Positions 33,115 through 57,573 of a stretch of DNA of 64,000 bases are shown here, one piece after another; the first letter of the stretch is position 1, and each line of letters starts with the position of its first letter. Where the stretch lies: contig NC_090387.1 of the NCBI RefSeq assembly GCF_036365525.1, positions 76,817,300-76,881,299 of the forward strand, written 5' to 3'. The notes below the pieces were generated by a model, which worked only from the letters and a program-made list of their open reading frames with translations, had not been told where the DNA came from and searched no databases. A program made the translations under genes and the position numbers. This DNA is from Heterodontus francisci (taxonomy: Eukaryota).

Positions 33115-33175
33115 ATGTTGTCCAGTGTTATATTTCTGTTTCTGTTCCTGTCTCTCCCGGGGATCATTTACCCAG
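33115..33175 (+). CDS. Gene A exon 1: signal peptide MLSSVIFLFLFLSLPGIIYP
   Basis: ATG at 33115, hydrophobic core, phase-1 donor CAG|GTACCT; 193-bp intron to the V exon. Confidence 0.82.
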
Positions 33176-36100
33176 GTACCTGTTTATTCTCAAACCAACC
33201 GTGTCTTTAAAAACAATACCGTAATTAGTTACCATACTAGCCGAACTAAAATTAGTTCGTCCGTCTGTAATATTCTTTCTCTTTTGTATTTTCATGTAGA
33301 AGATGCTGTGAAGTGTACGGTTATGGAATGAATACAATCAACCAAACTTTAAATATATTTTCCAACAGCTGCTTCGGTCACTTTGATCAGCGTGTTTCAA
33401 ACTCCCGAACAAGTAATTACGTTAAACGGGACAGACATCACCTTTTACTGCGTAATCCCCCTTTCTGATGACAATTCAGGGGTCGAAGTACGTTGGTGGA
33501 AAAAGGGCGAGAATGAATATATGCAAACAGGAGTCGATAACAGAAAACAATTTGGTTTCAAAAATAAAGGAGGAGGTTTTTTCGCGTTGCTAAACGCGAC
33601 TTTCCAAGACTCTGGAGTCTATCACTGCGTAGTAATCCGTCAGGGAAAAATTATAGGAAATGGAACAGGATCAAATCTAACTGTATGTGGTAAGTGACCG
33701 ATGTGAACGGGAACGTCCAAATATATCAAATGTAGCTGTTTTGTCATTGTTATATTGCACCCGCTTTGATATTGTAAAACGTATATTGATACGTTTACAG
33801 TGAAACTCTGTACACAACTGCTAATTATGCGGCAAAATATTACCTGTCCTTTGCCGAGTTGCGTAAAACGCTATCAATATTAACAAGGTAACATGTTACA
33901 AATGCAATATACTGCGTATGCTAGAAATCTGAAATATATACAGAAATTGCTAAAAATGCGTAGCCGATTAGGTAATATCTGTGCAGAGGGAAACAGAGTT
34001 ACCGTTTCAGATTTATGACCTGCCATCAGTAAAATGTTACTGGATTCATCTCAAAATGTGCTTCTAACATCAGACTTCTGTTGATGGAAGCTGCGGAAAA
34101 ATGTCCAGATACGTGGATGACTGACTGAAATGTATTCCTACACGACACGGCTCTTGTTTGCACCGATGCTTTGAATGTAAGTGAGGTGTCACACTCTAAC
34201 AAAATTAATTGTCACATTCTGACAGACTGGTTCGCGTGACGGATTTCATATCACATGACATTAACTTTTAATCAATGGATTTTTCCAACAATCTGTCCAT
34301 GTACCAGAATTTCTCCACGTCTTTTGCCTCCAATAAATATAACATTCCGCAGAGACTGTGTCGCTGAAGCCCTCTGAGGTCGAACCGCAGGCAATTCCCC
34401 TCAGCCAATCTCATGCTCTGGCTATGTGAACTGCCCGATATCCACGACGGCCCTCATTTTATTACCGGTAATGGACAGATTATTCGTTTCTCTCGTGGGA
34501 TGACAGACAGACTTAGAATTAATAACAAACATGGATACACTCGAAAATAGTATTTTCCTCAGTAACGTCTCCTCGGTAACCTGATTTCCCCCATTTTCTG
34601 TTCCGCAGCTCCCCCAACCCCATTGAAGCTTTTCTCCAAGCCACCCCAGAACAATTCAGCTACGACTCTGCATCTTGTTTGTGAATCGGCTGCGTTTTAT
34701 CCGGGCGATTTCACCCTCGTTTGGTATAAAAATGGCACCAAAGTCGCAACTGGGATAAATCCGAAAAAATGGCAGAACGCTGAGGGACTTTATGAAGTTT
34801 CCAGCTCTTTGGAAGACATGCAGCCTGTGCCCAACGGGGCTGTTTACATCTGTTTGGTATCTCATATTTCCCTCCAGGTTCCCGCTATTGGCCTCTACGC
34901 GGTTAACAATTCATGCTCAGGTACGGGGTCAACAGGCCATATCGTGTGGTCAGCAATTTGTATATTCGGAAAGGAATTATCATAGTGTTTAATGATATCT
35001 ATTATCGTAAAGATAGTTTGACAATACTAAAGTAAAGAGAAAATTAACGTTTGATTGTAAAAATTGTTGAGCCGAACCTATTGTCAAACCGAAGTACCTT
35101 CTACCCTGAAACCGCCTGTTCAATCCTATTATTTTACATATCTTGCTTATTATTAATTATTGAAATTTGTCCTCTTGTTGAACTGACTTTATTCTTTCCC
35201 ATTATCTGTTTTCCTCTCATGACCTGCGGAACCAGGCTGGACAGTTTGTTTGTTTAGCCTGTGTGGTGCGATTCGCTGTGAATAGGCGACACCTCCATGA
35301 TACAGAGGTTTGGTTTGGGAACTTGTTTCATGCAGTTCCTTCGGAATGTGACCCCAGATTTGTTTCCCTTACAATTGGTTGCAACATGCCAGTTTATTGA
35401 TAACTAGTTTCCTGTAATTGATAAAGAACCGTGTGTGAATTTCAATTCCTGTTCAATAAATGCAGTCCACAGAATTGAGTTAGCATTTCAACCGAATTCA
35501 TACAATAAGCATTTTTTCTAAGGTAGTGGCGCGTCACGTGCCACAGTATTGTTACGATTGCATCAAACAATAATTTAAGAGCAAATGAAAAGCCAAGTAC
35601 AGGAAAAATCCTTTCTGTTCAGCGAAACTAACTCATTTGGAATTCTAATCCTCCCAAACCAATATTCAGAAAATCCGAAACTGGTATTCCTCCTCGCATA
35701 ATATTCCAGCCGTATGCATCCTTTGTGAGAAGTGCCATTTGCTATCAGATCCAGAAATATAAATTAAGATTCATTTCAAATAACCCTCTCCCTCGCCTAA
35801 TTGTTGTAAATATGGGCAGTAGTTTAACCAACAAATTATCTCAAAGTCTCGTTTTTAGGTAATGACTGAAACAAATTAGAACTCAGTACCAATCTTTTTA
35901 ATCTTGCAGAACCTGATGATAAATATTATTACATCTGGGGTTCTGGATGTGCAGTTGGTGGATTGGCGTTTCTGGTGTTCATGATTATAATTGGAACGAG
36001 ATGCAGTTTGAAGAATAAAGGTAAGTATTTCGTTATCGTTTGATTTTAATACAAATCTTCAGGGTAATAGCGAGAGCGTCCAGGGCGGTACAGAAAGAGA

Positions 36101-38716
36101 ATAGCGCGATTATTAATTAATTGTTAAAGTGATGTTATCTCATGCCACAAAGCAGAAATCGCTTCCTGCAAATAGAACTAGATTCAGCATCTTATATAAT
36201 GTAATAATTATCATAGAATCCGGTTATAAAGGATCTGATTATCTAGACATTACCAACGAAAACGCCCACTTTCTGGCAGATGATAAGCGAAATCCGATCG
36301 CTTGTTCCAGCACTTTGGGGTCTATGACTAGTTGAGTAAAGTGTTGTCAGAGTCCAGTCGCGAGCAAATGTACACGACTAATGAAGGTTTCCTGGATTCG
36401 GATTTCCAAAAAAGTTCGGAAAATGTCCTTTCACAAAATAACTGTGGATAAGAAAGCCTATTTTCTCCATCCAAAAATGTGGAATAATCCCCCTAATGTA
36501 GAATCCAACCATTTGTTAAGGGATCCCAGGACGATTGCCTCATTTGCTATATCTGAAAGTTTATTCTCTGTGCGAAGAAGAATTTCTTGACATCATTGCT
36601 AAAATGATCATTTGCTACATCTTTTAACCGGTTTCCCCACAGGTAAATATCTCATACAATACAGGAACTGTAATGTAGTGCTTTTCTGTTACTCCAGTGG
36701 TAATCCAATGGTCTGGATTTATAATCCAGAGAAGATGGCGGCAAACCTCGCCATGGCATTTTGAGAACTTAATTCAGTTTAAATAATTTGGAAATTTAAA
36801 AAAAAACGGCCTGGGTAAAAGACAAGTGACCATATTCTGTTGCATTGCCATAAAATGTTAAAAAATCAATTGATGACATTTGGAGACGGTGTAACGGGGT
36901 CTGGCACATTAACGACTCTGATCCTCCACCTGTGGCCTCTGAAGTGGTTTCGTACGCCGTCTATCTGTCTAAGGGCAACTAATGATGGACAATAAATACT
37001 GCCTTAGTCAGCGACACCCATATCCTGAGGAAGAATTAAGCAAAATTGTGGTTTAACTTTTTCTATATACGTAGTATTGTCATGTATTTCCATAAAATCA
37101 TGGTTCAGACGCCTCCTTTGCAGTTTAACAGATCCAGCTTATCCAGAGTGTCCGCATAACTCAACACCCTGACAATGGGAAATCAGCCTAGCGGCTCTTT
37201 GCGCTGGCACTAGCGCGTCACCATTGGTGACCAGAATTGGTCACAATATCCAGTGGTCCGTGCAGCTGGAGCACTGTACAGTTTCATTGCTCTCTCCTTT
37301 GACTTACATTATACTGTTTTGTCTATGTATTGGTTTTGCCCTTTGATGCTCTGCATTGGATGGACATGTTTAGCGTCTAGTCTACTAAATCCTAGGTCTC
37401 TTTCAGTTCCGTCCTTAGCTATTTCAATCCAATCCATGGAGTATATATGCAGCTTGTTTCTTTTTTTCATCCTGGCTGTAGCGCTTTACTCTTCTCTGAG
37501 TTGAATTTCATCTGACACTGCTCTGACCACCTATATAGGTATATATAAAGTCATGTCAAGCTTTACATTGCCTCTAAAAATACTTTTCAGAACACTAACA
37601 TGGAAACTGAAGAAATATTGTGCTTACTGAATGTAATTAAATTGCATTAATTTGCAGGTAAGCAGGAAAGTAGAACAATACTGAGCACGCATGAAGGACT
37701 GGTAAGTTCATGCCATTTTTCCAAGGAGAGGATTCCAATTTATAGAAATCTTGTTATGATAGAGATACTTTATCACAACCTATTTCGCAAAAGTATTTGT
37801 TTCTTTTCGATGTGTCATTCGCATCGCGTTTTGAAAATCATTTGAACCTGCGATGCTGGTGCAAGTGATTGAAGAGAAGAAAAATTAAATTGGTAGTTTC
37901 AGTCAACAAAATCTAGACAATACTTATGCGTGCATTCATCTAAACCTCGCTTTTGAAAGCTGGCATCACACCTCTAAGATGCAGAACCCGCCTCTTGTTT
38001 AAATATATCTGTAACATTGCATTGTAGTGAAAATCGACAAGATGAAATGGCAGTTACAATAGACACACTATTTACCGGACTTAACATTTGCATAACTTTA
38101 AATGTATTAACTGTGGATTTCTGCATTTTGTTTGTTGCCTAGGCCATTATGTTCATTGTTTGATCAGCAAGCTGTAAACTGGTGAAGGTAATGAACTCGT
38201 CAAATAACAAAACATTTTCTTATTGGTCAATGCAGGGGGAAGAGGACAAGATCGTGACTTATGCTGCAGTGGATTTGAACAAAGCCAAGAAAACTCCAGG
38301 ACGTAAACATGAAGAGGAGATGACAGCGTACGCTCAGGTGGGGCTGAGAAGCAGAGAATAGAAGCATACATATTCCGCGGAGCACCAACATTAATGTAAT
38401 AGCGGAGTATTAGTTGTTCTGACTTTGGCCGTATGCTGCATCTGAAGGTTTTTCTGTGTTATTCTATTGACTGCCTTGAGCAGTCAATGCCACGCCCAGC
38501 AAAGAGACAAATCAACCGTATTTCCAAACATTGTTTTTCCAGATAAAACAAGGGACGTTTCGGGACAAGGTGACAGAGGCGACTCCAGAATTGTCGGGCT
38601 CGAAGAAAGCGGGACAATCTAGAAATAACAGAAGAAGCGCAGAATATGCCGAGCTGGAGATAAAAACCACAAAAGGAGCAACAGAGGCTTTTTACACAGA
38701 AGCAAGAACCAATTAG
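33115..38716 (+). CDS. Gene A: type I membrane IgSF receptor (leader-VJ-C1-TM-cytoplasmic tail with Tyr motifs), SIRP-like/NCR3-related, about 340 aa; 6 coding exons: 33115-33175, 33369-33689, 34609-34920, 35910-36020, 37658-37701, 38543-38716
   Basis: All introns are GT-AG with phases 1,1,1,1,0. Exon lengths 61+321+312+111+44+174 = 1023 nt give an uninterrupted ORF ending in TAG. Every exon has a homologous counterpart in gene B. Confidence 0.88.
33369..33689 (+). CDS. Gene A exon 2: Ig V-set domain with in-exon J-like G strand
   Basis: Acceptor TTTTCCAACAG, donor G|GTAAGT. Motifs: ITFYC (B-strand Cys), VRWWKK (C-strand Trp), DSGVYHC (F strand), NGTGSNLTV (GxG(T/S)xLxV). Confidence 0.93.
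34609..34920 (+). CDS. Gene A exon 3: Ig C1-set domain
   Basis: Acceptor TTCCGCAG, donor G|GTACGG. C1-set signatures: LVCESAAFYPGDFTLVWYKNG, GLYEVSSSL, VYICLVSHISL. Confidence 0.93.
35910..36020 (+). CDS. Gene A exon 4: stalk + uncharged transmembrane helix (EPDDKYYYIWGSGCAVGGLAFLVFMIIIGTRCSLKNK)
   Basis: Acceptor TCTTGCAG, donor AAG|GTAAGT, 111 bp phase 1-1; hydrophobic run followed by basic stop-transfer residues. Confidence 0.9.
37658..37701 (+). CDS. Gene A exon 5: 44-bp cytoplasmic exon (GKQESRTILSTHEGL)
   Basis: Acceptor TTTGCAG, donor CTG|GTAAGT. Converts phase 1 to phase 0 as the last exon requires; same length as the gene B counterpart. Confidence 0.78.
38543..38716 (+). CDS. Gene A exon 6: terminal cytoplasmic exon with AEYAEL (ITIM/ITSM-like) and AFYTEA
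   Basis: Acceptor AAACATTGTTTTTCCAG, nearly identical to the acceptor preceding gene B exon 57388; open to TAG at 38714-38716. Confidence 0.85.
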   Translation: MKQGTFRDKVTEATPELSGSKKAGQSRNNRRSAEYAELEIKTTKGATEAFYTEARTN

Positions 38717-39007
38717 AGATACAATCGTTGGCGCAGAAATCAGTTTATTGCTGTATATTAATTTATCCCGGAGCCATACCAATTTCACAGATTTCAATGG
38801 AAAATTGAATCTAGCGAGTTGGGAAAGAGCCGGAGATCCGTTACGACAGTTTGCTGCCCAAGCAGTGGAGGTGTTAATATCCCCGTGTACGTGTATTTCC
38901 GTGTTATCCAATCACTGAGATGTAACGCATTCCAGTGTCATAGCATATAATACAGCCATGTTTATTCTTTAATTATTTGGCGATTATTAATCAATATAGA
39001 TACTTGA

Positions 39008-39013
39008 AATAAA
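39008..39013 (+). terminator. Candidate polyadenylation signal of gene A
   Basis: AATAAA about 290 nt after the stop codon, in AT-rich sequence. Confidence 0.45.
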
Positions 39014-42000
39014 ACAAAATCAAGTTAAATCTATTATTTGATAGAGAACAATGATATGCTATTTCAATTATAATGATCTGTTTCTGTCATGCTGTATCTA
39101 CTTATTATCATGTATACAAATGGAGTTAAAGATCAACCATAACGCATGATACTTATTTCTGGGAAGAACACGGCATAAAACTGCGTTTTGACGTCACGTG
39201 TTCTGTCACTATATTCCGGCTTCTATTCCAGGCAATCGTCCTGGGTTAGAGGACAGAAATGTTCAATCCATGAACTCATCCATAAACTCTGTGAACTCAA
39301 CTTCCGAATGACAGTATACGAAACACATACCTGTGCTCTGGGATGGCTATCGATTCCTTTCCAAAACGATACACCCAGACAATGCATATCGCCTGGAAGC
39401 CATGATAATCCTCAATCGGCCCTTATCATCAAAGGAAAGTGATGTTTGGGAAGGAGTTCTGAGACGAATAATAGAATTATTCCGGCATTTATAACATAAT
39501 TTATGAGAAAACATGTACTAAATACATTTTCTTTGTTGAAAATATTTAATACACCATGATTTAGGTACATCAAATATTGCGAGGTCTCGGCAATGAAGAT
39601 GAAAACAGGTTATTTGATGTAAACCATTAACGTGCAGTACACCTTCGACTTTATCAATCCTTTAGGCAAAACGGATATACTCTATCCATTTACAGAGGTT
39701 CCTTAATCGGGAAAGGGACAATTCGTGGTTTAAAATCTTAAACTAAGGCCTATTTGGGAATAGGTCAACGAAATTACAGAGTTGGAGCATTGTGTAACTG
39801 GTGCTGGAAGAACAGTAGCCCAGCAGTTTCAGTGACTAATTATAATTATGGCCCAATTTTAACTCCGTGTAAGTGAATGGATTTTGCTTGAGTTAAAATT
39901 AGTCCCAATTTAAGTGTTTGACTCCAAATTTAAAGACCGTAGAAAAAGAAGTGAAGCCGTTGGCTGTTGCCTTTTGTAATTGTCATGGTTGGTTGACCGT
40001 GTGCATTATCATGCAGGAGGATAGATACTGTACCAAGTGTTTCAGAATCCTGGAACATTACAGCATAGAACCCGGCCATCGCTTTCATAGACTGTGTGCA
40101 ATTACTTTTCTTCACATGAACCACTGACTTAATTCTGCTCTTCTGTCTTCATAATCTTCAACATTCTTCTTTCCACTTATTTTCCACCTAAAAGGATTTT
40201 CTGCTTCAACAACCGTATGCGGCCGATAACTCCACCTCCAAACACTCTAACCATGGCCTATGCAGCGTTTTTCACATTTCAATTTTGCGATTATGTGAAA
40301 TCTGTGCCCTCTTGTTACCGTCCATCTGGCAATGGTAATAATTCAACAGTGCATCACCGTCTTGAAAACCACTCATACTTACCCATTAATATTTTCTGCC
40401 CTAGCTTCTTAAATCTCTCCTTAGCTTTAATCACACATTCTTCGTAATATAATAGCCGACATGCCTACCATGGTTTCTGTATCCTTCTTTCAATGGCATG
40501 ATCATGGCACAAGCACAAATTACAGTCTAACTAAAGTCAAGTGCAACATTGCCTTTATATTTTTCTATTCATACCTCGACACAAAAAGTGACTCAAGGGA
40601 GTCTGTTTGGCATTGTATGGTAACATCATTAAAGACTTAAGTGTCCAGACAGCAGGGTCAGAGCTCTCCTGCACCATTTCAAATCCAACTATTTAAAGAG
40701 TGCTTTGTTTCTCCCCTTTAATCTTCAAAAATGCATTTCTTCAGACCTAACTGGCCGCTGAACTGCCCATCCCGCAATTCCGATCAGTGTTCACCTGCAT
40801 GATTTTACATTCTCCATCTTTCCCTTCCCATTAGGTGACATCTTCAAATCTGGATGTTATTCCCTCAGTTCTCATGAAAGGATAATTTATGGTTGTAGTA
40901 AATAAAAATCAGCTGTCTGTGTAACACCAGTCATCAAATCTTTCCATTCCAAGAAGCTTCTGTTTACCCTTATGCTACCTTCCAATCATTTCACTATTCT
41001 TAGGACCAGATTCCACTTACTTCCTTGTGGTGAAGGACTCTTTGATAATTCCTTATCAAACGTCTTTCGAAAGTCCATGTAAATCACATCCACAAACTTT
41101 CCTTTGTCGTTTTCCTCTGACTTTTTCAAAGAATTCTCTAAGGATAATCAAGCGCAATCTACTTCACAAAAATCGGTGCTGGTTGTTCTTTATGAACTTG
41201 TCTTTCTACAAATATGTGGCAAATTTGTCTAGAGTGATACTGGGCCCAGTAACCAAGTAAATGTTCAATAACTGTCGAACTACGACAATGTTTCACATTA
41301 TTGTCGCATTAGATTTTCTCATCTAAAAACAACATATGTTTCAAGATTCATTTGATAACTGGATAATGAATCGTGATGCATTCGCGCGCGAGTACCAGTT
41401 AACAGGTCAGCGCGTGGAAGCGATTAGCGAAGGCTTTCGCCGTGTGGTTATTTGCTATATTACCAAGTGTTGCGAAATATGGACACAGGCGTGCGGGTTT
41501 CTAAAGCTAAATAAAGAACGTGGCTGATTAGCTCATCTCCGCAGCAGCAGTACAAGTTTTACATTTAGCTGCTAATTGAAACACTCTAAAAATGTGCCTA
41601 GTTTTGCGTTACCACGGTCATTACCCACCATGGTTCATTACAATTGCAGAAACATTAAACGGAGATTCCATTTGCTATTTTCCCTTGTAAACTTTCCTAC
41701 CTCACTATCAAATAGAATCTGTAACCTAGTCACTTTAAGGCGACTGAATCGTTGTTATTTATTTCCACTTGCCGACATTATTCTAAGTTTTTTTTATTTG
41801 TTTGTGGGATGTGGGCGTCACTGGCTAGGCCAGCACTTATAATCCATACCTCATTGCCCTTGAGTTCCAGGCTATTTCAGAGTCAACCACGTTGCTCAGG
41901 GTTTGGAGTCACATGACAGCACATTGCGTTCCCTAATGGACATTGGACAACCAGATGGGTTTTTACAACAATCAATAATGGGTTTATGGTCACAATTAGA

Positions 42001-46460: not shown

Positions 46461-47457
46461 ACTGATATTGGGAGCAGCTGTATCAGATCGTCCTTTCAGC
46501 CTCAGAGAAGCAAAGGTCATTTAAATATTTCTGTAACTAGCTGGTGGCTCAGTAAGCAAATGATCCCTAAGATGCATAACTGAGTCACGCAGAACAGGAA
46601 TGTCACTTTTTCCCTAGGCCTGTGTTGTCTGTTGAAATAGTGGTTAGGTAATGTGTTTCTACAGTGCATCTCAGCTGTCGTGACCTCAGCTTGAATTTGG
46701 CGCATAGAGAAGATCAGGTGGTTATGTGACAGCTCCTACAATTTGATGTCCCACTAATGGACTAGGGAGAACAAAATGAAAGCTGTTTAGCTAATGCTCT
46801 TGCCTTTAATGACTGTTAGTGTTATCCCCAAGACTCATTGCGGAGTTCATCCGTCTGCAGTGCAGACTATATTTTAGATTATTTTACACTTTCCACTCCC
46901 TATCTTTCGATCTGTCCCTCATTTTCTCTTTCTCTCGCTTTAGCTGCAATCTGCTATCTGCAGTTGGGTCTCCAATCGCGCTGGGTTTCTATTTTTGGGT
47001 CTGAATTGCTTTCAATTTGACAGTGCTATTGTTTAAGAGCCATTTTTGGGGCTTACCTAATTAAATAGATGCTCATCCGTGATATTAACAATGAGGTGTA
47101 AATGCACCTTCTGATTACTTGGATTTGACGCACAGTTGATGCAAATTCAGGGGAGTATAAATATTCGTGTCAAGCTCCTTGAACATTCTGAGTAAAGCAA
47201 AATATTTCGGATGCTAGAAATCTGAAATAAAAAAAGAAAGTGCTGCAAATACTCAGCAGGTCTGGCAGCATCTGTGGAGAGATAAAGAGAGTTAACGTTT
47301 CAGGCTGATGACTTTAATGTGCACACGGGATAATAAGCTGTTGTTTAATAACATTCATCTGATTACAATTCTAGGAAACGTTCAGGCCTAGGCATTCATT
47401 ATCATTGTGCCTTGCAATAACACATGCCCGTCACAAGAAGCACCCTGCTGTAGAATT

Positions 47458-48508
47458 TGTTAGATCAAGGCGGGAGGAGTGCACTGTTTATTCTAGTCCC
47501 ACCTCTCCACACGTCACAACATATACTTAAATGTTCACAGACTGATATGGTCAATCATATACTCTACTTTTTCCAGAATAAAATACACCAACCAGGTTTC
47601 TTTAACAAACAACAAAATGATGAGTTTAGTATAAAAAAGTATTAACCCATAATGAAGTAAAGCATAAACACAGTTTGAAATATAACAGTTCACTATTTAC
47701 CTTAGCCCTTCACACACATACACACACACACGCTGGTTAACAAGACAATTAAAAGAAAATTTTTCTTTAGAGCTCGGTTACCAAAAGAAAATCAACAAAA
47801 ATAAACACTTAGGCTGAATATGTGCTCATTATTGAAGAAAAAGGTAAATATATAGAAAGATCTCCTTGGTTGTAGTTTGATATTCCAAATGCATATAGAA
47901 GGCTGTCACAGGGATTATCCGAGAACAGTTCTTTCCAGATGATGTTGAAGATCTGTTTGAGTAGGCTTTCCAAGAAATGCATCTACAGAGGCTTCCTATA
48001 GGCCTTACAGCAGAAATGCGGCAACAGTGGTTTCAGTTCCCACACATTCAATATGCAAGGTTTCTTCAAGTACAGGAAGAAAGAAGAGACTGACACATTG
48101 GACACGCAGTTTATTTCAAAGGGAGAGGAAGAGATAAGCTGCGTTTCCTTGGCAGGCAACAAACAACTGTCTTCCAGGCAGTTTACCCTCTAACTCACTG
48201 CCCAAAATGAATCCAAAGCAATGTCACAAGAATAAAGCCTCCTGACCTCTTTAAATCTTGACCTGTCACTTCTCTGTAAACATCTTCTCCAAGTCAAAAT
48301 AGCAAGCTCCCTGTTGGTATTTTATCTGAAAACAGGTGTCTTCCAGTATGGGCTTGTTTACAAGCCAAGTACAGGAAGCATTCTGGTGACCTCTGCCGAA
48401 AAAACAGCAAGTTTAGCATCTCTTCAAGCTTCCAGATGAATTAATGTCCATAATTCAACTATAAGCCCTGAAAAGCATATTTTACAAAAAAGAAGCGCCC
48501 TTATAACA
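47458..48508 (-). mobile_element. Solo LTR with 4-bp TSD AATT
   Basis: TGTTA...TAACA termini; AATT at 47454-47457 and 48509-48512; homologous to 55774-56676. Strand inferred by analogy with the Gypsy LTRs. Confidence 0.85.
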
Positions 48509-49561
48509 AATTTATCGCGTTATTATTTACGCATGTAAGTCTTAACTGTCCGCAGATTATAACGTTTCAACTGTTTGCTTCAAATAGACGAAAATATATT
48601 GGTTATTAAAATTCCAGATTGCATAAAAGTTACGCTATTGACAGTGGTGTTCTAAACGCTGTGTAAACGCGCAGATGATCCAAATTCAATACAGTATCCG
48701 TTTACCAGGACGTGAGCCACGTTAGGACTTATACGGATGTTTTTTATTGGACAACACATCCCAGCCCTTCCGGAACACCTGGACTTCGCAACAAAAATGG
48801 TTTCTCATCTAACAATTGTTTTCATTTTCGTCTCCAGTCTTCCTGTTCTTTACAGCATTACTTTTTTATGATATAATTTTGCTGTCAGCCCTATTCCGAA
48901 TGTTTCCCCTCCTTCCCTCCTATTGTGTAAATATGTCCGCCAGCACGCTCTTCCTCATTTCTGCTCCCTCAGCCATTGCATTCAAGACGTATTCCTTCTG
49001 AGACTCCAACATCTGCCCAGTTTCTGCTTCCTCCGGTCGTCGCCAGGATAAAAAACAAACTTTCCTTATTAATAATAACTGTCTCCTGATTTATTTCGTT
49101 TCCCACCTTACACTTTTCAACCTCAACGCTGACCACGTATACCGCAGTTTCAGAATTTAAATTAATTTAAAATGCAGGATGTATGTGGCATCGAGTTTGA
49201 AACATTACGGCCCTTTCTATCACAATCGCAGACGGCCGTAAAACGCATTACGTTTCACTTGGACAGCTCAATTATGTTATCAAGTACAACTTATTATGAA
49301 ACATAACGATATTTTCCAACAGATACATGGGTCTGATGTTGCCTGGAGATGACATTTGGTGGTGTGAGGAGACTCTAAACTACATGAAGCACACCCCTTC
49401 ATTTCACTCTTTAAACTCGGCCGTTGGCACCACAGTCACATGCGTGTATCCTCAACACGTCATTGCCTCCCACTTCATATCAGGTTACATACAGTGTTAT
49501 GTCCCCAGAAAATGAGAATTTCGTGTTAGTTATCTTCAAACGGCCAGTACTAATCACTGAA

Positions 49562-49616
49562 ATGTCTGCGAGGGCTGTGCTTCAGGGCATACAATTCATG
49601 GAGTTTATCTTCCTAG
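49562..49616 (+). CDS. Gene B exon 1: putative leader MSARAVLQGIQFMEFIFL
   Basis: ATG at 49562, phase-1 donor TAG|GTATTT, 119-bp intron containing (CT)n. Less hydrophobic than a typical signal peptide. Confidence 0.62.
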
Positions 49617-52600
49617 GTATTTTCCACTGTTCGCTCTGGTTTTTTTTTGTTTCTCTCTTGCTCTCTCTCTCTCTCTCTCTCTCGCTAAATCTCTCCCAGT
49701 GCTTTTTATAACTATAACTAAATTTTGTTTTTTAGTTGCTGCCGATATTCTGGTTGAAGTGACCCAGGTCCCTGAAAATATCTATTCGATCGTTGGTACA
49801 GATATTGCATTCAATTGCATATTTCCTACTTTTCAAGATGATTCAGATGTGAATGTTTATTGGTGGAAACTTGGCGGAAAGGAATTGATACAACCAGGAT
49901 CAGACAGTAGGAAACGTTTTGTCAATGAGAAAGGAAGAGCCTCCTTTCAACTTTTGAATGTCAGTGTCCAGGACTCCGGAGTCTATCACTGTGGAGTAGC
50001 ACATCTAGGAAACAGAATCGCAAATGGAAGTGGATCACAACTTGTCGTCAGTGGTAAGAGATGTGTAAAGACCGGATCTGCTGTATAGACTCACCGTTAT
50101 TCAAAATAAATGATAAAAGTATAGCATTCCCTTCCCCTGTCTCTGGTACTGCTTTAACATTTGCATTGGCAATCAAATACTTCAATAGATTTTAGTTATG
50201 AAATAACGTGTGGCACTCTGGGCTGCTTTTCAACCATCTTAATTAATTTAATAATAATTATTTCTGCTCTTTCATTCATTGCACAGGAAGCGTTTTCATG
50301 CCATTTCGGTGCGAATAAAGAATGTGAAATAACTTGAAAGGTTTTCAGTACAAATAATATTTCGGACAGTTACAAAGTAAATTTTGATGACCATCTGCAG
50401 TAGAAAGATCATGCTAAAAGTGTTGTTATTAAGTCGAAAGTCTAATTTCAAGACGAATTCAAAAGTTACTCTACGTGATTATTTTTGAATGCCGTGTTAC
50501 TGCTCTTCTTGTAGAATGCCCATTTATGTAGCACATTTGGTGCCCCGAGGCGTTTTAGTAACAATTAAGTGTTTTTGAAATGTAGTCACCTTTTTAATGC
50601 AGGAGAACGTGACAGCCAATGTACACCCAGCAATGTCCTACAAATAGAAATGAGATAATGACCAGATAGTTAATGATAGTGTTTGGAGGATAAATATTTG
50701 CCAGGGCAATATACTTCGCCGAATAGTGCTGGGGGATCCCTTATGTTCACCTAAGAGGTCAGAAGGGGCCGAGAAATAATATCTCATCCAAAGGACGGCG
50801 CTTTTTTCCTACAGTATAGCACTCCCTCCTACTGCATTGAAGGGTCAGTTTTGATTTATGTACTCAAGTCTCGGATTAGACTTGGAACTCACAATATTCT
50901 TACTCGGAGGTAATGGTGCTGCCACTCAGCTACGGTTACCACTGTATGCTCGAAATCTGAGGGATCAGACTCTCAGATGCCTGGCTGTATTTCCTGTTAT
51001 TCAATCAGTAGCTTCATTCAGCTCTTGGCTGACTGACACAAGAATTTTATTTGTCTCAAACCCCTTCAAAAACGGATATACCATCGAGAAAGAATTTTAT
51101 GAATGTGTCCCTGAGTTGTGCAAACGCTATTCGCCCCAATTCTTACATTTCAGTGAGAAATGTCTCTCACATGCTAAAGTAACCCTTGAAATGAAGGTTT
51201 TGCCTTGATTTAAATCCTCGATTGCGATGTTATACGTTCCTTGTAAATCGTGTAAGCAGTGGGACTAAACCCCATGCTGGAAATTGAATTCCTTTCGTGG
51301 TTGTGATTAATTGAGAGAACTTGTCAGTCAAAAATGCTATGCCGTCCCTGCTTATTTCTCAGATTACAGTCAGTGATAAAACGGGTGCTGTATGTAGGAT
51401 TGCAACTCCCCTGCTTACTGTAGGTCGCGACACAGTATGAGCACATTCTGGAGGGTTCGTCAGGTCGCAAATGGAGGGCATAGAATGTGTTCACAAACAC
51501 AGCTCTTATTCACTACAGAAGACGACCGAATGCTTCATCCATGCTTATTCGATTCTTTTACCTAATGAGGTAATACAGGAGAGTCAGGTTTGGAGATTTT
51601 ACACAGGGAACAATATAAATGCACTGAGTTTTATCATCTGGAATGCACCATCTGAAAGGGTGTTGGAAGCAGATTCAGTAGCAACTTCAAAAGGACATTT
51701 GGTAAATGCTTGAAGGGAAACATTTGCAGAGCTGCACAGTGGCGCAGTGGTTAACACCGCAGCCTCACAGCTCCAGCGACCCGGGTTCAATTCTGGGTAC
51801 TGCCTGTATGGAGTTTGCAAGTTCTCCCTGTGTCTGCGTGGGTTTCCTCTGGGTGCTCCGGTTTTCTCCCACATGCCAAAAGACTTGCAGGTTGGTAGGT
51901 AAATTGGCCATTATAAATTGCCCCTAGTGTAGGTAGGTGGTAGGGAAATATAGGGACAGGTGGGGATGTGGTAGGAATATGGGATCAGTGTAGGATTAGT
52001 ATATATGGGTGGTTGATGGTCGGCACAGACTCGGTGGGCCGAAGGGCCTGTTTCAGTGCTGCATCTCTAAACTGAACTAAGCTCTATGGAATAACTTAAG
52101 ATGGGCAGAGTGGCATTCTTCTGTGCAGTACCGCTGTATGCTTCTATAATCTACAGTAATTAATACCGCAATGTTTTCACTTCATCATTAACAAACAAAT
52201 TGATAGCTCTGTTAGGCTGTTATAGCCCACCCGAAATCATACCTCTCGTTTGGGAAAGGCCGCCATAAAGGTCAATGCCATTCTAAGTTCCAGAATAGAC
52301 GAGATATTAACTTTCTACTTCGACCTTTTACCAGCTCCCCCAACTCCGGTGAGGATTGTTTCCCAGGCATCTGAGAGTAATGTATCCGGTGCTTTGGCTC
52401 TCGTGTGTGAAATGGCTTCATTCTACCCAGAGGCACTAACTATCACTTGGTACAAAAATAATGTAAACGTTGAGACTGGAATACACACCACGAAACAACT
52501 TAGCAGAGCCGGAATGTATGAAGCTTCCAGCTATTTTGAAGAGGCACAGTCTGTCCAGGGAGGAACTGTTTACGTCTGTCTGGTTTCTCACGCAACTCTC

Positions 52601-54080
52601 CAGGTACCAGCCATGGCAATTTACTTGGTTCCTAATTCTAAGCCAGGTAAGATGTCATTTTTCTTAGAAAAACGAACATGTGACAGGGTTAGATTTCTTC
52701 CTTTCGTTATTGAAAGGGAAAGTGTTAGAAATTCCATTATTGGCGGTCGTATGGGTTGGAACGAACGGAGCGTTGATGAAACAAAGCGACTGTGGGAGAA
52801 TTTTACATTCATATAAAGCAGAGAAACACAATATGCCTAGACATACCTAACAGAGAAAGCCTTCACTAAAATAAGTTACGATATAACCACACGTAGTGGC
52901 AAGGGTAAATATTACTTCAACCAATTGACTCCTTAAAACAAAAACAAAAAATCAAATTTTAGTATCATCAGTAGAACCTGCTCCTGGCCCGCAGTGTGAA
53001 AAAAGGATATCGAGGCCATGGATCGGTTAGCTAACAAGAGGCATAGAGTAAAAAAAGGCTGAAATGAGCGGTAGCGCAAAATGGGCGGTCACGAATCAGC
53101 AGCCGGTTTTTCATTTCTTCTGATTGTTTTTCCATTAGCCCGCTTTCCACCGGTCAGTAAATATAACTTAGCTCCCCGCAATCACTCAGCCCCCTCCCCT
53201 CCACCCCCCTCCCCCGCTCAAAACCGCTTCGTTTAGTTTTAAACAGCGTTAAATGAATTTCTATCAGCTTACCCTTTGATTTCCAATGCTAAACTATCAA
53301 GAAATTGTTCAATATCAGATTCTTTTTACGGCTCTGACTGTCGATGGCACACTCCACAATGCGCAGCTCCATATATTAAAGTTATATTTATCTTACAGGC
53401 GGTGACAGCACCTCGCCCTCCACTTATTTACGGATATTTGGATGTATAGGGTTTGCATTGGCGTTTTTGGTGCTGATGACCGTCATTAGAACGTCGTTCA
53501 GATTCGTTAACTGTAAAGGTAAGATGTCACCCGATCGTTTAATCACAACCAGCAGAGACGGCTAGTTGGTAGCGAGAAAGGATTGATCCACGATTTCACT
53601 TAAAGGCTAAAAGTATTGTGGGCGCTGGAATAGAGCTATGGTGATTGTTGAATTGTGAAATCGGACTGTGGTCCTGAAATGCAGCATTTATCTTAGATTG
53701 GAATGAGCAGAAATGTGGATTGTACTCCCTCCCACCGCATAACGATCCGAAAATCGTCTCCCTGGCTTACACTAGATTAAATTTAGGAGGCGATGAACAT
53801 ATCCCAAATTCTTTGCTCTGTCGTTTAGGAAGAAATGTCAGGTTGTTTTCCGTAGGGAGCAATTATGCACTCTTATTTGTTAATTAACGGCATAAACGCA
53901 AATTCGGAAATTTTGCGAACTTTCCCGACTTTTTTTCTCACTGTAAATTAACATTCATGGTACTTGGAATGTATGGTTCCATTCATGGAACCATATCGTG
54001 CATCATTGGCAATGACGTTTTCTTTTTCTTTTGTTTTAGTAAGCAGACAGAGAAAGGATGAAGCAAACAATTGTGACTAG
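49562..54080 (+). CDS. Gene B: paralogous IgSF receptor (leader-VJ-C1-TM with Arg-short tail), about 281 aa; coding exons 49562-49616, 49736-50053, 52335-52646, 53399-53518, 54040-54080
   Basis: GT-AG phase-1 introns; 55+318+312+120+41 = 846 nt ending in TAG at 54078-54080. C1 domain about 50% identical to gene A (hand count 51/104). Confidence 0.82.
49661..49683. repeat. (CT)n microsatellite in gene B intron 1
   Basis: Directly visible. Confidence 0.9.
49736..50053 (+). CDS. Gene B exon 2: V-set domain with J-like strand
   Basis: Motifs IAFNC, VYWWKL, DSGVYHC, NGSGSQLVVS; acceptor TTTTTAG, donor G|GTAAGA. Confidence 0.93.
50510..50933 (-). mobile_element. Old Deu-domain SINE (SacSINE1/AmnSINE-like) in gene B intron 2
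   Basis: Minus strand begins TAGCTGAGTGG (A box) ... GAGTTCCAAGTC (B box-like). The central region resembles the Deu domain from memory; not database-verified. Confidence 0.55.
51734..52080 (+). mobile_element. tRNA-derived SINE (HE1/V-SINE-like) in gene B intron 2
   Basis: A box TGGCGCAGTGG 51740-51750, B box GGTTCAATTCT 51784-51794; 3' end resembles CR1 tails. Confidence 0.92.
52335..52646 (+). CDS. Gene B exon 3: C1-set domain
   Basis: LVCEMASFYPEALTITWYKN ... VYVCLVSHATL; 312 bp, same length as in gene A; donor G|GTAAGA. Confidence 0.93.
53399..53518 (+). CDS. Gene B exon 4: stalk + TM with Arg (GGDSTSPSTYLRIFGCIGFALAFLVLMTVIRTSFRFVNCK)
   Basis: Acceptor TCTTACAG, donor AAG|GTAAGA; shares GC....LAFLV.M with the gene A TM. 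Confidence 0.88.
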
Positions 54081-54083
54081 TCT
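54040..54083 (+). CDS. Gene B exon 5: 44-bp cytoplasmic exon with in-frame stop (VSRQRKDEANNCD*)
   Basis: Long polypyrimidine tract + TAG acceptor, donor TCT|GTAAGT, same size as gene A exon 5; TAG at 54078-54080. Confidence 0.75.
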
Positions 54084-54275
54084 GTAAGTTTCTAACAGTT
54101 ATGCGATTGATATTTTAAGTGCAATGTGATAATTTTGTGCTGAGCTGAGAACATGTCAAATCTACTTCTGACTTATTTTACATGTTTGCTGTTTATGCAA
54201 CGTCGTATGCTTCCCTAGTTAACCACAATTAAACTGGGACATCAATCCTTTTCTGAATGAACTCCTCCCAAGTCA

Positions 54276-54487
54276 CAAAATGCTGGAAATACTCAGCAGG
54301 TCTGGCAGCATCTGTGGAGAGAGAAGCAGAGTTATCGTTTCAGGTCGTTAACTCTTGTTCATGTCGTTAACAACCTGAAACGTTAACTCTGCTTCTCTCT
54401 CCACATATGCTGCCAGACCTGCTGAGTATTTCCAGCATTTCTTGTTTTTATTTCAGATTTCCAGCATCCGCAGTATTTTGCTTTTAC
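54276..54487. repeat. Inverted pair of the Penelope-LTR-like repeat forming a long palindrome
   Basis: AAATGCTGGAAATACTCAGCAGGTCTGGCAGCAT... is mirrored by ...ATGCTGCCAGACCTGCTGAGTATTTCCAGCATTT. Confidence 0.8.
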
Positions 54488-55773
54488 TCCCAAGTCAAGG
54501 TTGGCGCAGAAATCCTACCGAAATCCTTTGCCCAGGCATTAAGTCCACTCAGTCCCCCCAGGTCCAGGAGTACAGTAATTTTTGACAATCCCAAAACTAC
54601 AGTTTAAAAACAGCCCCAATGTAGGCCGGTTCCATGGTAGCATCTTGTACCCGGTTATCAAGGGAGGGAATTTGAGGTAGGCTCCTCGCCGCAGGGTTCG
54701 GAGAACAGCAGCGAACAGGCTTTCCAGTCAGGTGAACGGTTTGATAACTTGTATCCAACCTTACTCTTAGGGTTCTGCTTTTTTGATGGAAGGCGTTTTT
54801 CGCCGGTCCAGTCTGAGGAGAGGAGAGGTCACAGCGAAAATCTAACACCCTCCTCATGCAGCATCCCTGCTTCTAGATATCGAAAACTTTTCGTATAGAA
54901 AATAGGCAGAAAAGCAGAAGCGCCCTCTTCCACCTAATTTCCATGAGTAGATTGGACTGCAGCTACTGCAGTCGTTCTATCCCAGAGCAAAGTAATGGGG
55001 GTTAGGCCAGGCGTAATTAGCCACTGTCCTTGTTTTCCTGACCAACGCACCTAAAGACAAAGCATTTCACTAGGGCAAAGTTCTGGAAAATGAACTTTAA
55101 ACGGAACGTTTGGATGGTTTATTCTTAAGACTTGATATACTTTTCTTCTGAGAGTATCGGGTCAGTTTCAGTTTGTCGCAGCCCTGCACCAGCAAGGAGT
55201 TTCTGCCCATCCCCCCAGGACGAGCTCCCAATTGAAATTAGAAAGCCAGCTTTGTGCCCTGCAAGAGAATTTTTAAAAGTTCGCACGGAACATTTGCTAG
55301 GGCCAAGCGCAATGAAAAAACAATACACCACCTTATCAGTTTACGTTTATTTTAATGCACCATGTAAGTCTGCCTTGCTGCACACAGAATGGGTTTTAGA
55401 TTTATGCTTCACGCTTTGGGTTCCGTCGGTGTCCTGAAGGCGGATGTACCGTTAATATTTCAGAGGTTTAGCGTGCTCCTGGATGTTAAATGCGAACTTT
55501 TATGTCGATGGTCACTTAAAACCACATCGCCTCGATGGAACTCGCAGTATTTCCCATATTATAACTGTACGTCAAAATGACTCAATGGCTGTTCATTTGG
55601 GCGAGCTGAGGTCGTGGAGGACGCTCTATAATATATATTTTTCTTCCTTTTTTTTATAAATACTGTTTGAAAATATTTTTCAGTGTTTGGAAATAATATT
55701 AGGTTCATAAGGCCTTACTAATACTTATGTCGCTACATTGATAACTGGGATAAAAGGTTTTAGTTTTGAGGAT

Positions 55774-56676
55774 TGTTACCACGGAGACGGGAGGAGTGTA
55801 CTGTTTTTCTCTAGTTCCACTTCTCCACGGGTCACAACATATATTTAAATGTCTACCCAGATACCGACATTGTCAATGACCCACACTATTCTATTTCAGA
55901 ATAAAATCCGCCAGCCAGGTTTCTTTAGACAAACAACAAAATTAATAATTTATTATAAAACAATACCTATTTGGTAAAGATGCAAAGCATTAACACATAG
56001 ATTGAAATATGAAAGTTCCCTTTTAAATTAGCCCAACACACACACGCGTCAGTTAAAGAAAATAGAAAGACGTTTTCTCTGGAGAGATCTCTTCACAAAA
56101 AAAAACAAAAAAAAAAACACTTTGGCCAAATACTTGTTAATGATGGAATGATATCAGTTGTCCCTTTATTCTGGCGTCCAAAATATGTGTCATAGGTATC
56201 TTTTTGGAGCAGTTCTATTCAGGCGACGTTGAGGATTAGTCTGGCAGGCTTTCCAGGAAAAATGTAGCATCAGGAGTTTCAGGTATCACACTGAATTGTC
56301 CGGGTTTCGCAGCGAGATGGGGAAAGGGTGCATTGGGAGCTTCTCCCAGGAGGTTGCAATCCCAACTGACTCAAAAAAAACTTCAAAACAAAACCAAGTC
56401 TTGACCACCATAAATCTTGACATGTCACTTCTCTGTAAACAATTTTCCTCGGTCACCAAGGTTTTTGCAGTTACTTAGCTGAAGAAATGTGACTTCCAGT
56501 AAGTGTGTTTTTAAAGCAAGTCCCAAAGTCCTTCCAGGGACCTATTTTTTTTAAAAACAAAAACAATGTTCAATATCTATGGAAATTCTTCAGTCCTCCA
56601 GATGAATACATTTTCACAATTCTAAAACACGAGTCCTCAAAAATTATTTTTAAAAACTTGAAGCCCTTTCCTAACA
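55774..56676 (-). mobile_element. Solo LTR with 4-bp TSD GGAT in the last intron of gene B
   Basis: TGTTA...TAACA termini; GGAT at 55770-55773 and 56677-56680. Confidence 0.85.
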
Positions 56677-57387
56677 GGATGGAGCAGAGAACCTTTTTTT
56701 TAAACGAACACAAGTAAGGTAAAAAAAAATTCTCATAGGTGTTCAAATTTTGAAACATTTTCGGAAAATAAATGGGGGAAATGCACTGACCATGAGACAG
56801 TATCTGGAGGGCGTAAATCTAACATCATGAACAAAAGAACCGAGTCATAGGAGAATATTTCTTAGCTGTTGGAACATGGAATCCCCTCCCAGAACAGGTG
56901 ACAGCATAATTATAAAAGATTTTACAAGAGGCGACAACTATTTCAAAACTAAAATAAGCAAGTGGATATGAGGAAAAGACAGGTGAATGGGACTAAATGG
57001 ATACCATGTTCGAAGAACAGGTATAGGCACCAGTATGTAGAATTCTACCACTCTAGCACGATATCAAACACGTGACTCGTGAAACCTTGGCTGTAACGAG
57101 CATTATATAGAGTATTTTGAGGACATTATTTTGATTATTTTGAAACTATGCGAGCAACCATTATGAATTTTGGGACACTCTATAGCCTTTTCTAAAAAAA
57201 ACAAAGCACTTACTGTAGGGGAATGGATGTTAAGATAATCATATTGCCTGAGGTAAGTAGCTGATCCAATAATATAAATATACAAACCCAAAGACTCTTC
57301 AAATATCATGATGACCATACTCTGTTTTATGATATATTCTGTGGATTAACGAAGTTGAGATAATTTTTCAAAACATTGTTTTTATAG

Positions 57388-57573
57388 ATCTTACAAGAAG
57401 CAGTTGATAACTCACAGTCTTACGCAGCCGTCGAACTGCTTAGTTCTTAGAAAAATTGAAAACCTAGAAGGAAAGAAAAAGGCACAGAATACGCAGAAAT
57501 AAAGACGGTAGATCAAAAGAGAAAAGTGCCGCTCGTCTACACAGAACCAAGTTTCAAATTATACCAATTCTAG
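57388..57573 (+). pseudogene. Gene B fossil terminal exon (former ITIM/ITSM tail, now predicted 3' UTR)
   Basis: Reads ILQEAVDNSQSYAAVELLSS*KN*KPRRKEKGTEYAEIKTVDQKRKVPLVYTEPSFKLYQF*. Aligns without gaps to gene A exon 6; internal stops at 57448-57450 and 57457-57459; acceptor conserved. Confidence 0.85.

Follow-up and report, generated by a model that had tools for sequence, protein, structure and literature searches.

In the SIRP receptors, SIRPbeta couples to DAP12 through a lysine in the middle of its transmembrane segment. Chicken CHIR-AB has an arginine near transmembrane position 4, and chicken PRARP (Fu et al., 2019, cited in PMC10751288) is reportedly a set of paired VJ-type IgSF receptor genes that are linked, do not rearrange and contrast in their signalling features. 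The two tyrosines of the SIRPalpha BTAM are spaced 24 residues apart (PMC5589908). In KIR2DL4 and macaque KIR3DS, an arginine at transmembrane position 4 pairs with Asp 3 of FcR gamma, and activating forms derive from inhibitory ones by tail truncation (PMC8102735). Cartilaginous fish have UrIg, a secreted protein with a VJ and three C1 domains, and UrIg2 with ten Ig domains (PMC12227049). Accounts of innate paired receptors are plentiful for mammals, birds and teleosts and scarce for cartilaginous fish; a survey of 2014 detected neither LRC- nor FcR-type receptors in the latter (PMC4016189).

The window analysed here is a 64,000-nucleotide stretch of the horn shark, Heterodontus francisci (NC_090387.1, positions 76,817,300 to 76,881,299 of the forward strand); coordinates are counted from its first letter. 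It probably contains two members, genes A and B, of a multigene family of non-rearranging V(J)-C1-transmembrane receptors whose nearest characterised relative is SIRP. Gene A would be of inhibitory type and gene B has lost its tail to a stop codon, the two being neighbours and family members and not a matched pair with one common ligand. The exons are as follows.

33115..33175, + strand: gene A exon 1; ATG and signal peptide MLSSVIFLFLFLSLPGIIYP; GT donor, phase 1 at the end
33369..33689, + strand: gene A exon 2; 321 bp, V-set with J-like G strand NGTGSNLTV; Pfam V-set E 2.4e-8
34609..34920, + strand: gene A exon 3; 312 bp, C1-set, Pfam E 2.4e-10; an extra cysteine near the end (NNSCSG)
35910..36020, + strand: gene A exon 4; 111 bp, stalk, uncharged transmembrane segment IWGSGCAVGGLAFLVFMIIIG and stop-transfer residues
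37658..37701, + strand: gene A exon 5; 44-bp cytoplasmic exon, (G)KQESRTILSTHEGL; the sole candidate with a strong acceptor and donor
38236..38337, + strand: gene A exon 6; 102 bp, cytoplasmic, GEEDKIVTYAAVDLNKAKKTPGRKHEEEMTAYAQ; located by tblastn of family tails
38543..38716, + strand: gene A exon 7; AEYAEL, then FYTEA; TAG stop at 38714-38716
49562..49616, + strand: gene B exon 1; ATG and leader MSARAVLQGIQFMEFIFL, 100% identical to residues 1-18 of P0001
49736..50053, + strand: gene B exon 2; 318 bp, V-set, Pfam E 2e-8; J-like strand NGSGSQLVV
52335..52646, + strand: gene B exon 3; 312 bp, C1-set, Pfam E 4.6e-13; RNA joint from 52646 to 53399
53399..53518, + strand: gene B exon 4; 120 bp, stalk and transmembrane segment STYLRIFGCIGFALAFLVLMTVI; RNA joints on both sides
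54040..54083, + strand: gene B exon 5; 44 bp, (V)SRQRKDEANNCD; RNA joints from 53518 to 54040 and from 54083 to 57388
57388..57573, + strand: gene B exon 6, first part; fossil tail, in the old frame ILQEAVDNSQSYAAVELLSS, stop, KN, stop, KPRRKEKGTEYAEIKTVDQKRKVPLVYTEP...; now 3'UTR

Leader, V(J), C1, transmembrane and 44-bp exons follow in a common order in the two genes, which lie on the same strand. Every exon border is AG/GT and the phases are consistent (1-1-1-1-0). Pfam assigns a V-set domain (E 2e-8) and a C1-set domain (E 2e-10 and 5e-13) to both, all over the curated cut-offs, and favours the C1-set (E 5e-13) over the butyrophilin-type C2-set_3 (E 0.2). Each gene has one 312-bp C1 exon between its V and transmembrane exons, and its J-like strand is continuous with V in a single exon that ends at a GT donor; the NCBI model P0001 runs from V into C1 with no junction between. 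No further Ig exon was found by tblastn in the window, and the gene B RNA contig joins C1 straight to the transmembrane exon. The preliminary description had proposed same-strand neighbours with matching exon architecture (both C1 exons 312 bp, both small cytoplasmic exons 44 bp) and a single V plus single C1 layout, and each structural statement was borne out. Genes A and B are predicted from sequence to be non-rearranging V(J)-C1-transmembrane receptors. A colinear similarity between 47468-48282, downstream of A, and 55785-56441, in a gene B intron, was considered as a hidden exon and rejected; it is repeat-like, with an RNA depth of hundreds to thousands in three runs.

Gene A spans 33115-38716 and has seven exons on the + strand. 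Exon 6 carries an ITIM (VTYAAV) and an ITSM-type tyrosine (TAYAQ|I) spaced 23 residues apart, the only canonical ITIM/ITSM pair of the gene. When it was aligned to the SIRPalpha BTAM peptide, the score was equalled by just 10 of 20000 shuffles. Exon 7 is a second, decayed tail unit, with VTEATP where LTYAxV is expected and AEYAEL kept. The neutral transmembrane segment and the long tail with YAEL and YTEA had been recognised earlier, but the 102-bp exon 6 with its ITIM/ITSM had been overlooked. By its predicted tail, gene A appears to be an inhibitory-type receptor. Once phosphorylated, the exon-6 unit (VTYAAVDL...TAYAQI) would serve as a docking site for SHP-1 or SHP-2 through their tandem SH2 domains, like the SIRPalpha BTAM. 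Use of an alternative donor at 38350 would cut the tail short behind its first unit. A search for an annotated protein identical to gene A found none, the nearest being the paralogue XP_067904999.1 (V 99% and C1 87% identical). P0025 was ruled out as the product of gene A; it departs from the window sequence in leader, V and C1.

Gene B extends from 49562 to about 59.2 kb on the + strand. The NCBI model P0001 (281 aa, 'NCR3LG1-like [Heterodontus francisci]') corresponds to it with 100% identity. The gene B mRNA is spliced. RNA contigs from two runs contain the three joints listed above, confirming transcription and the predicted junctions, and the whole mRNA is covered by one 2669-nt contig. 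The last exon does not end at 57573, as had been thought; the RNA contig continues at least 1.5 kb beyond 57650, and an AATAAA is present at 59201. The protein is closed by an in-frame TAG at 54078-54080 within the 44-bp exon, where orthologues have Lys or Asn. Its C-terminus is ...NNCD and its cytoplasmic tail, RTSFRFVNCKVSRQRKDEANNCD, has 23 residues and no tyrosine. The arginine at the transmembrane edge and the short tyrosine-free tail of the preliminary description hold, the tail being set by this TAG and P0001 being an exact match.

The dead tail exon is retained in the mRNA as 3'UTR. In the old frame SYAAV and TEYAEI remain, together with two more stops, and the translation is 64% identical (tblastn) to the ITIM/ITSM tail of the Chiloscyllium orthologue (P0006 residues 284-327). 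The horn shark thus lost the ITIM/ITSM tail through the nonsense codon of the 44-bp exon. Gene B is left with an intact ectodomain, a conserved basic transmembrane residue at about helix position 4-6 and the short tail without tyrosine.

The basic residue is an arginine (CGG, 53431-53433) on the outer margin of the hydrophobic stretch; in the AlphaFold model the transmembrane helix begins five residues ahead of it. R or K occupies this site in seven of the eight B-lineage proteins with a modelled transmembrane segment. Mustelus has Gln there. The arginine had been taken as the mark of an activating form. It is not diagnostic of one, as shown by the B orthologues P0006 (Chiloscyllium plagiosum) and P0004 (Scyliorhinus torazame), both of which combine Y[LV]RIF with an ITIM plus ITSM tail. 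Given this marginal location and the ITIM tails that accompany it in two orthologues, the arginine may simply be a stop-anchor residue. Coupling of gene B to an ITAM adaptor is purely a matter of inference from the position of the arginine. Gene B would most likely signal through a transmembrane adaptor of the zeta or FcR-gamma type, whose acidic residue lies close to the outer leaflet; alternatively, it may act as a non-inhibitory competitor.

Gene B could also be decaying, or be a decoy that no longer signals, if the stop simply disabled an inhibitory receptor whose arginine has no adaptor role. The old tail frame has three stops in total and has lost the ITIM -2 residue (SQSYAAV), orthologues have the arginine alongside ITIM tails, and the 2014 survey reported the FcR gamma chain absent from sharks (PMC4016189), all of which point this way. 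However, the reading frame is open through leader, V, C1 and transmembrane segment, and the mRNA is spliced. With the stop only 3 nt upstream of the last exon junction, escape from nonsense-mediated decay is expected (50-55 nt rule). Ray B orthologues are naturally short-tailed with Lys at the same transmembrane site, suggesting that the tail-less B form is long-lasting. Decay or a decoy role is rather unlikely.

At the sequence level the two genes have opposite signalling modules, an ITIM tail in A and a charged transmembrane segment with a short tail in B, the truncation being seen in the B mRNA. The genes adjoin on one strand with one exon plan. The A-then-B order seems conserved, P0007, a model from Scyliorhinus torazame, joining an A-like V with a B-like V-C1-transmembrane unit. 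These features would suit a matched inhibitory/activating pair that sees one ligand and delivers opposite signals, as SIRPalpha/beta and KIR2DL/2DS do. The ectodomains, however, share just 45-50% identity (V 45-54%, C1 49.5%), and the closest relative of the A ectodomain is not gene B but P0025 (V 99%), from another locus. In both a V and a C1 tree the two fall in separate, well-supported clades, each with sharks and rays. The B clade contains sharks and three rays (support 95 in the C1 tree, 98 in the V tree); the A clade has a support of 97 in both trees and includes the sawfish P0031 in the C1 tree only. Both lineages go back beyond the shark-ray split. In addition, ITIM-tailed B orthologues exist. 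Given the low identity and the separate, ancient lineages, A and B do not form a tight SIRPalpha/beta-style pair, and a matched pair with one ligand is improbable. What stands of the proposed paired system is the contrast in tail and transmembrane segment; the assignment of A and B as partners of the SIRPalpha/beta or KIR2DL/2DS type does not.

A third arrangement, a germline-encoded heterodimer of TCR type with A and B as its chains, is very improbable. Both are V(J)-C1-transmembrane proteins from adjoining genes, B has a basic transmembrane residue as TCR chains do, and A has a membrane-proximal cysteine (NNSCSG). Yet B has no hinge cysteine, that of A is not conserved among A-lineage orthologues, and A has a long autonomous ITIM tail.

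That family appears to be restricted to cartilaginous fish, as far as the searches reach. Two database searches gave 24 and 27 matches, all chondrichthyan and none from bony vertebrates, and the V-C1 matches whose source was checked were all from a shark, ray or chimaera. The gene A V domain is matched at E <= 1e-3 by only 164 of 1.84 billion proteins. In the searches gene A was entered exon by exon and gene B as the protein P0001. Family proteins are 281-375 aa long, their precomputed Pfam matches are V-set and C1-set only, and the two tyrosines of the tail units are 23 residues apart in 35 of 40. Paralogues in the family are P0014, P0016, P0018, P0019, P0025, P0040 and P0191. ITIM-tailed members occur together with short-tailed members that have a basic transmembrane residue, in agreement with the earlier idea of a cartilaginous fish family mixing inhibitory and charged-transmembrane forms. 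The automatic names are SIRP-like, tapasin-related, NCR3LG1-like, Ig lambda-like, CD276 and HLA-DO beta-like. The suspicion that annotation had gone only as far as SIRP-like/B7-H6-like was correct, B being 'NCR3LG1-like' and its relatives 'SIRP-like'. Apparently the family is undescribed; the open-access literature searched yielded no account of SIRP-like or VJ-C1 ITIM receptors as a family in sharks. Of practical value here are the curated exon models and an annotation warning, six automatic names having been given to one family.

The likeness to SIRP raises the possibility that this is a known family, the chondrichthyan SIRP orthologue, whose third domain was lost or never gained. The family profile matches SIRPalpha d1-d2 (PDB 2wng_A, E 2e-29) in a single V-C1 stretch. 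Among named ESM Atlas clusters those of SIRPalpha come nearest (0.93-0.94), NCBI often assigns SIRP names, and the tail is similar to the SIRPalpha BTAM in its unit and in the spacing. The tail, however, could be convergent, needing in both cases to accommodate the same tandem SH2 domains. For the same family profile UrIg2 ranks slightly above SIRPalpha, as the second-best PDB match (9dmx_A, E 2e-32). There is one C1 domain and not two, the gene A V domain shows no specific match to a SIRP V domain (SIRPalpha is absent from its best 60 PDB chains), and bony-vertebrate matches were absent from both database searches. Orthology to SIRP is doubtful, SIRP being taken here as the nearest characterised relative.

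The shark, ray and chimaera family, which combines an antigen-receptor-shaped V(J)-C1 ectodomain with a predicted SIRPalpha-like SHP-docking tail, is a concrete candidate for the paired-receptor role in cartilaginous fish. More tentatively, this SIRP-related family may fill there the role of KIR, LILR, SIRP and NITR, with repeated switching between ITIM-tailed and short-tailed basic-transmembrane forms, and might represent the V-C1 condition ancestral to SIRP. In gene B one would see a switch of this kind already completed, with the disabled ITIM/ITSM exon still transcribed as 3'UTR; the gene would provide a dated natural example of an inhibitory receptor turning short-tailed.

Structure and sequence searches also bring in other Ig superfamily proteins. 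In a wide structure search the best fold match of the gene B model was B7-H6 (4zso_E, Z 16.4 over 192 residues, 23% identity). B7-H6 (NCR3LG1) likewise has a two-domain V plus C ectodomain and a transmembrane segment, and the NCBI name of B is derived from it. However, PD-L2, Neph1, NCAM2, butyrophilins and others come within 1-2 Z units, so the match reflects the general fold. The shark family also differs from B7-H6 in its receptor features, a BTAM-type tail and basic-transmembrane forms. Foldseek against the PDB returned only Fab light chains, which does not tell families apart, and PDB sequence searches with single exons were dominated by antibodies. NKp30 (NCR3) has a single V and no C domain, whereas A and B both have a C1-set exon. 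Tapasin and tapasin-related proteins have a large N-terminal tapasin domain; in A and B the V exon directly follows the leader. TCR and Ig light chains use separate V and J segments, whereas the J-like strand of A and B lies within the V exon. UrIg and UrIg2 are likewise chondrichthyan, do not rearrange, and have their VJ in one exon ahead of C1-type domains, but the shark family has one C1, a transmembrane segment and a signalling tail. PRARP, as described above, would resemble the locus in gene type, linkage and signalling contrast.

KIR2DL4, macaque KIR3DS and CHIR-AB share with gene B the arginine near transmembrane position 4, with an ITIM tail present or not. Tail truncation in the KIRs follows the same course of events as is proposed for gene B, where the relic tail is still present. 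Those receptors, on the other hand, have C2-type ectodomains and no sequence kinship with the shark family, and their FcR gamma partner was shown experimentally, that of gene B being putative. SIRP shares the order of V domain, C1-set domain(s) and transmembrane segment, the V domain being N-terminal and including a germline J-like strand, and short-tailed basic-transmembrane members are present in the shark family as well. The tail units have two tyrosines each, xTYAxxDL...KxKK...TxYAxI with spacing 23 in the shark family and ITYADLNLPKGKK...TEYASI with spacing 24 in SIRPalpha. The differences are that the shark family is V-C1 and SIRP V-C1-C1, that the arginine of gene B is at the outer edge of the transmembrane segment and the lysine of SIRPbeta in its middle, and that A and B have diverged far more than SIRPalpha and SIRPbeta.

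The preliminary description had read genes A and B as a paired inhibitory/activating immune receptor system with VJ-C1 ectodomains. In the sense of a matched pair this reading was not borne out: the two ectodomains are 45-50% identical and fall in separate clades. V and C1 trees were built separately, with SH-aLRT as the support measure. The B clade contains orthologues of six sharks and three rays (support 95 for C1, 98 for V). The A clade, with support of 97 in both trees, holds P0025 from the horn shark (XP_067904999.1), P0028 from a bamboo shark and P0197 from a catshark, and is joined in the C1 tree by the sawfish protein P0031. Clade membership in the two trees indicates that both lineages are older than the shark-ray split. 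A Scyliorhinus torazame model has an A-like V fused to a B-like V-C1-TM, and the A-then-B gene order seems to be old too. The nearest relative of A is another locus, that of P0025, with a V domain 99% and a C1 domain only 87% identical, an exon-wise mosaic that suggests gene conversion or partial duplication. P0025 is a near-duplicate of A on the same chromosome, outside the window. Its model departs from the TM exon after "EPD", just past the exon start, into SINE-like sequence (FQHPQYFAF).

On the plus strand of the window, which has no N runs in its 64,000 nt, an ORF listing and three-frame reading showed two exons resembling V and two resembling C domains. Exon borders were set by reading the DNA and then verified together in one script.

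Exons of the two genes, from DNA reading
Gene A, plus strand: 33115-33175, 33369-33689, 34609-34920, 35910-36020, 37658-37701, 38236-38337, 38543-38716
Gene B, plus strand: 49562-49616, 49736-50053, 52335-52646, 53399-53518, 54040-54083, 57388 onward

Every intron is GT..AG, and the phases in both genes follow the usual IgSF order, 1-1-1-1-0. The matching exon plan noted earlier is correct, the C1 exons both being 312 bp and the small cytoplasmic exons both 44 bp. All four Ig exons scored over the curated Pfam cut-offs for V-set and C1-set. A J-like strand closes the V exons (NGTGSNLTV for A, NGSGSQLVV for B), which justifies the V(J) label. Apart from its two Ig disulfide pairs, gene A has two extra cysteines, at the last V-exon residue (LTVC, 33687-33689) and in the membrane-proximal hinge (NNSCSG, 34912-34917); a disulfide-linked dimer might be formed through them. 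Both are missing from B and are unconserved among A orthologues.

A tblastn search of the cytoplasmic region of A with family tails identified the additional 102-bp exon at 38236-38337, which encodes GEEDKIVTYAAVDLNKAKKTPGRKHEEEMTAYAQ. The long tail with YAEL/YTEA attributed to A was only part of the picture: AEYAEL and FYTEA are present in the last exon, but the 102-bp exon had been overlooked. Only this exon has canonical motifs, an ITIM (VTYAAV) and an ITSM-type TAYAQI across the junction, with a tyrosine spacing of 23 residues. The last exon is a decayed second copy of this tail unit, with VTEATP in place of the LTYAxV of relatives, followed by AEYAEL and FYTEA. The resulting model has 374 aa and a tail layout that agrees with that of the sawfish orthologue P0031.

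The product of gene B was found in a word-based search that took as query the stop-free ORF containing its C1 exon. P0001, a 281-aa protein named natural cytotoxicity triggering receptor 3 ligand 1-like [Heterodontus francisci], is 100% identical to B and has the C-terminus ...FVNCKVSRQRKDEANNCD. It ends there because the 44-bp exon, ...AAT TGT GAC TAG TCT/gt, has an in-frame TAG at 54078-54080, which accounts for the short tyrosine-free tail described previously. Orthologues have Lys or Asn at this codon. RNA from three runs of one sample was placed on 52200-57650. Spliced contigs in two of the three runs had the joints 52646/53399, 53518/54040 and 54083/57388, all GT..AG; therefore gene B is transcribed and spliced as predicted. 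A 2669-nt contig covers the B mRNA and extends at least 1.5 kb beyond 57650, and an AATAAA is present downstream at 59201. Since the stop codon is 3 nt upstream of the last junction, the mRNA should escape nonsense-mediated decay by the usual 50-55 nt rule. One contig (run X1) has T at 52551 for genomic C, changing Ser72 to Phe in the C1 exon, probably an allelic variation.

In the frame passed on from the 44-bp exon, the last exon of B reads ILQEAVDNSQSYAAVELLSS-stop-KN-stop-KPRRKEKGTEYAEIKTVDQKRKVPLVYTEP... In Chiloscyllium plagiosum the tail of the orthologue, ...LTYATVQPVSSMKNGNPRTKEKGTEYAEI..., is 64% identical to this relic, an alignment which indicates that horn-shark gene B no longer has the tail with ITIM plus ITSM that it once encoded. 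Besides the nonsense codon upstream, the relic has two further stops, and its ITIM -2 residue is gone.

The arginine reported in the B TM is present (STYLRIFGC... vs YYYIWGSGC... in A); the aligned codon is CGG (Arg) in B and TGG in A. In an AlphaFold model (mean pLDDT 88) the TM helix starts five residues ahead of the Arg.

TM residue and tail in the B lineage
Heterodontus: R; tail short, no tyrosine
Chiloscyllium plagiosum: R; tail ITIM plus ITSM
Scyliorhinus torazame: R; tail ITIM plus ITSM
Scyliorhinus canicula: R; tail short
Pristis, Mobula, Hypanus: K; tail short
Mustelus: Q; tail one ITIM

As judged from these sequences, the basic TM residue is conserved in the B lineage, yet it is not tied to tail loss. 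KIR2DL4 and the activating KIRs of macaques, whether or not they have an ITIM tail, carry an Arg at TM position 4 that pairs with FcR gamma Asp 3 (PMC8102735). By analogy, adaptor coupling of B is plausible. Against this, a 2014 survey did not find the FcR gamma chain in sharks (PMC4016189).

A and B are not a matched pair, but at sequence level a paired logic is seen in the family, which has both ITIM-tailed and short-tailed basic-TM members. In many, the tail contains one, two or three ITIM/ITSM units. Others combine a short tail with a TM that follows the pattern ..R[FL].L.......[DE]H, for example the database proteins P0015, P0040 (horn shark, same chromosome as A and B), P0055, P0088, P0198 and P0197 (within the A lineage). 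The C1 tree requires at least 10 switches between these states over 44 scored rows, "basic" TM being scored crudely with flanking Lys and Arg counted too.

All 24 proteins matched by P0001, and all 27 matched by a profile built from 18 family members, were chondrichthyan. When 1.84 billion representatives were searched exhaustively by HMMER with the A V exon, only 164 proteins reached E <= 1e-3. Among the V-C1 matches whose source organism was looked up, all were from sharks (Heterodontus, Chiloscyllium, Hemiscyllium, Scyliorhinus, Mustelus, Cetorhinus, Carcharodon, Heptranchias), rays (Pristis, Mobula, Hypanus, Hemitrygon, Narcine) or a chimaera (Callorhinchus); the non-chondrichthyan matches looked up were reptile multi-V proteins with no C1 domain. 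The best of these to the A V domain (P0036, P0064, P0071, P0089; turtle and viper) have three to six tandem V domains; their annotated names are pIgR-like, titin-like or NCAM2. In some of them the TM is of the IRMVLG type with Arg, or the tail reads VTYADL...VVYAEV, and they may form a separate expanded receptor family. Automatic annotation as SIRP-like or B7-H6-like had been guessed correctly: the inconsistent source names are SIRPalpha-like, SIRPbeta-1-like, tapasin-related, NCR3LG1-like, Ig lambda-like, CD276 and HLA-DO beta-like. No paper describing the family was found in the open-access literature. At least eight horn-shark family proteins are encoded on the chromosome of the window (99.65 Mb); no other paralogue mapped into the 64 kb.

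No other cellular genes were seen in the 64-kb window; degraded LINEs and SINEs make up the flanks and the stretch between A and B.

Repeats of the window
60701-62782 (plus), 18610-19986 (minus), 21774-22463 (plus), 44.0-45.8 kb (minus): LINE reverse-transcriptase ORFs or fragments (Pfam RVT_1, E down to 1e-36)
54277-54344, 54371-54489: SINE-like element, inverted pair in B intron 5
47190-47307 (after gene A), 33900-34013 (A intron 2): further copies of the SINE-like element
47468-47836, 48240-48282 (downstream of A) vs 55785-56148, 56399-56441 (B intron 5): colinear blocks, 73-88% identity

The SINE-like element is extremely abundant in the transcriptome, as its summed RNA-contig depth is ~3e5. 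The colinear blocks are more likely a repeat than an exon or enhancer common to both regions, given RNA-contig depths of 500-2000 in each of the three runs. A 184-aa ORF at 14086-14637 (minus) has a weak SCAN-domain match (E 2e-4, under Pfam's cut-off) and may belong to a retroelement as its gag-like portion.

Of the known families, tapasin-related proteins, NKp30, NITR and the rearranging receptors are each set apart from the shark family by a defining feature. By fold, B7-H6 ranks first (Z 16.4), tied with many two-domain IgSF proteins. The family profile matches shark UrIg2 (9dmx_A, E 2e-32) and, in a single stretch over V and C1, human SIRPalpha d1-d3 (2wng_A, E 2e-29). These two, CT3 (7t62_B) aside, are the only ones of the best 60 profile matches not labelled immunoglobulin or Fab chain. 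UrIg and UrIg2 have an unlike architecture. The presence of one C1 domain instead of the two in SIRP, and the lack of a SIRP-specific match to the A V domain alone among the best 60 PDB chains, argue against simple SIRP membership. In the ESM Atlas the closest clusters that carry a name are SIRPalpha, and the shark tail unit resembles the SIRPalpha BTAM peptide, DITYADLNLPKGKKPAPQAAEPNNHTEYASIQTS (PMC5589908), with a Y-Y spacing of 23 in 35 of 40 units vs 24 in SIRPalpha. Exon 6 of A aligns with BTAM end to end, with a score reached by 10 of 20000 shuffles.
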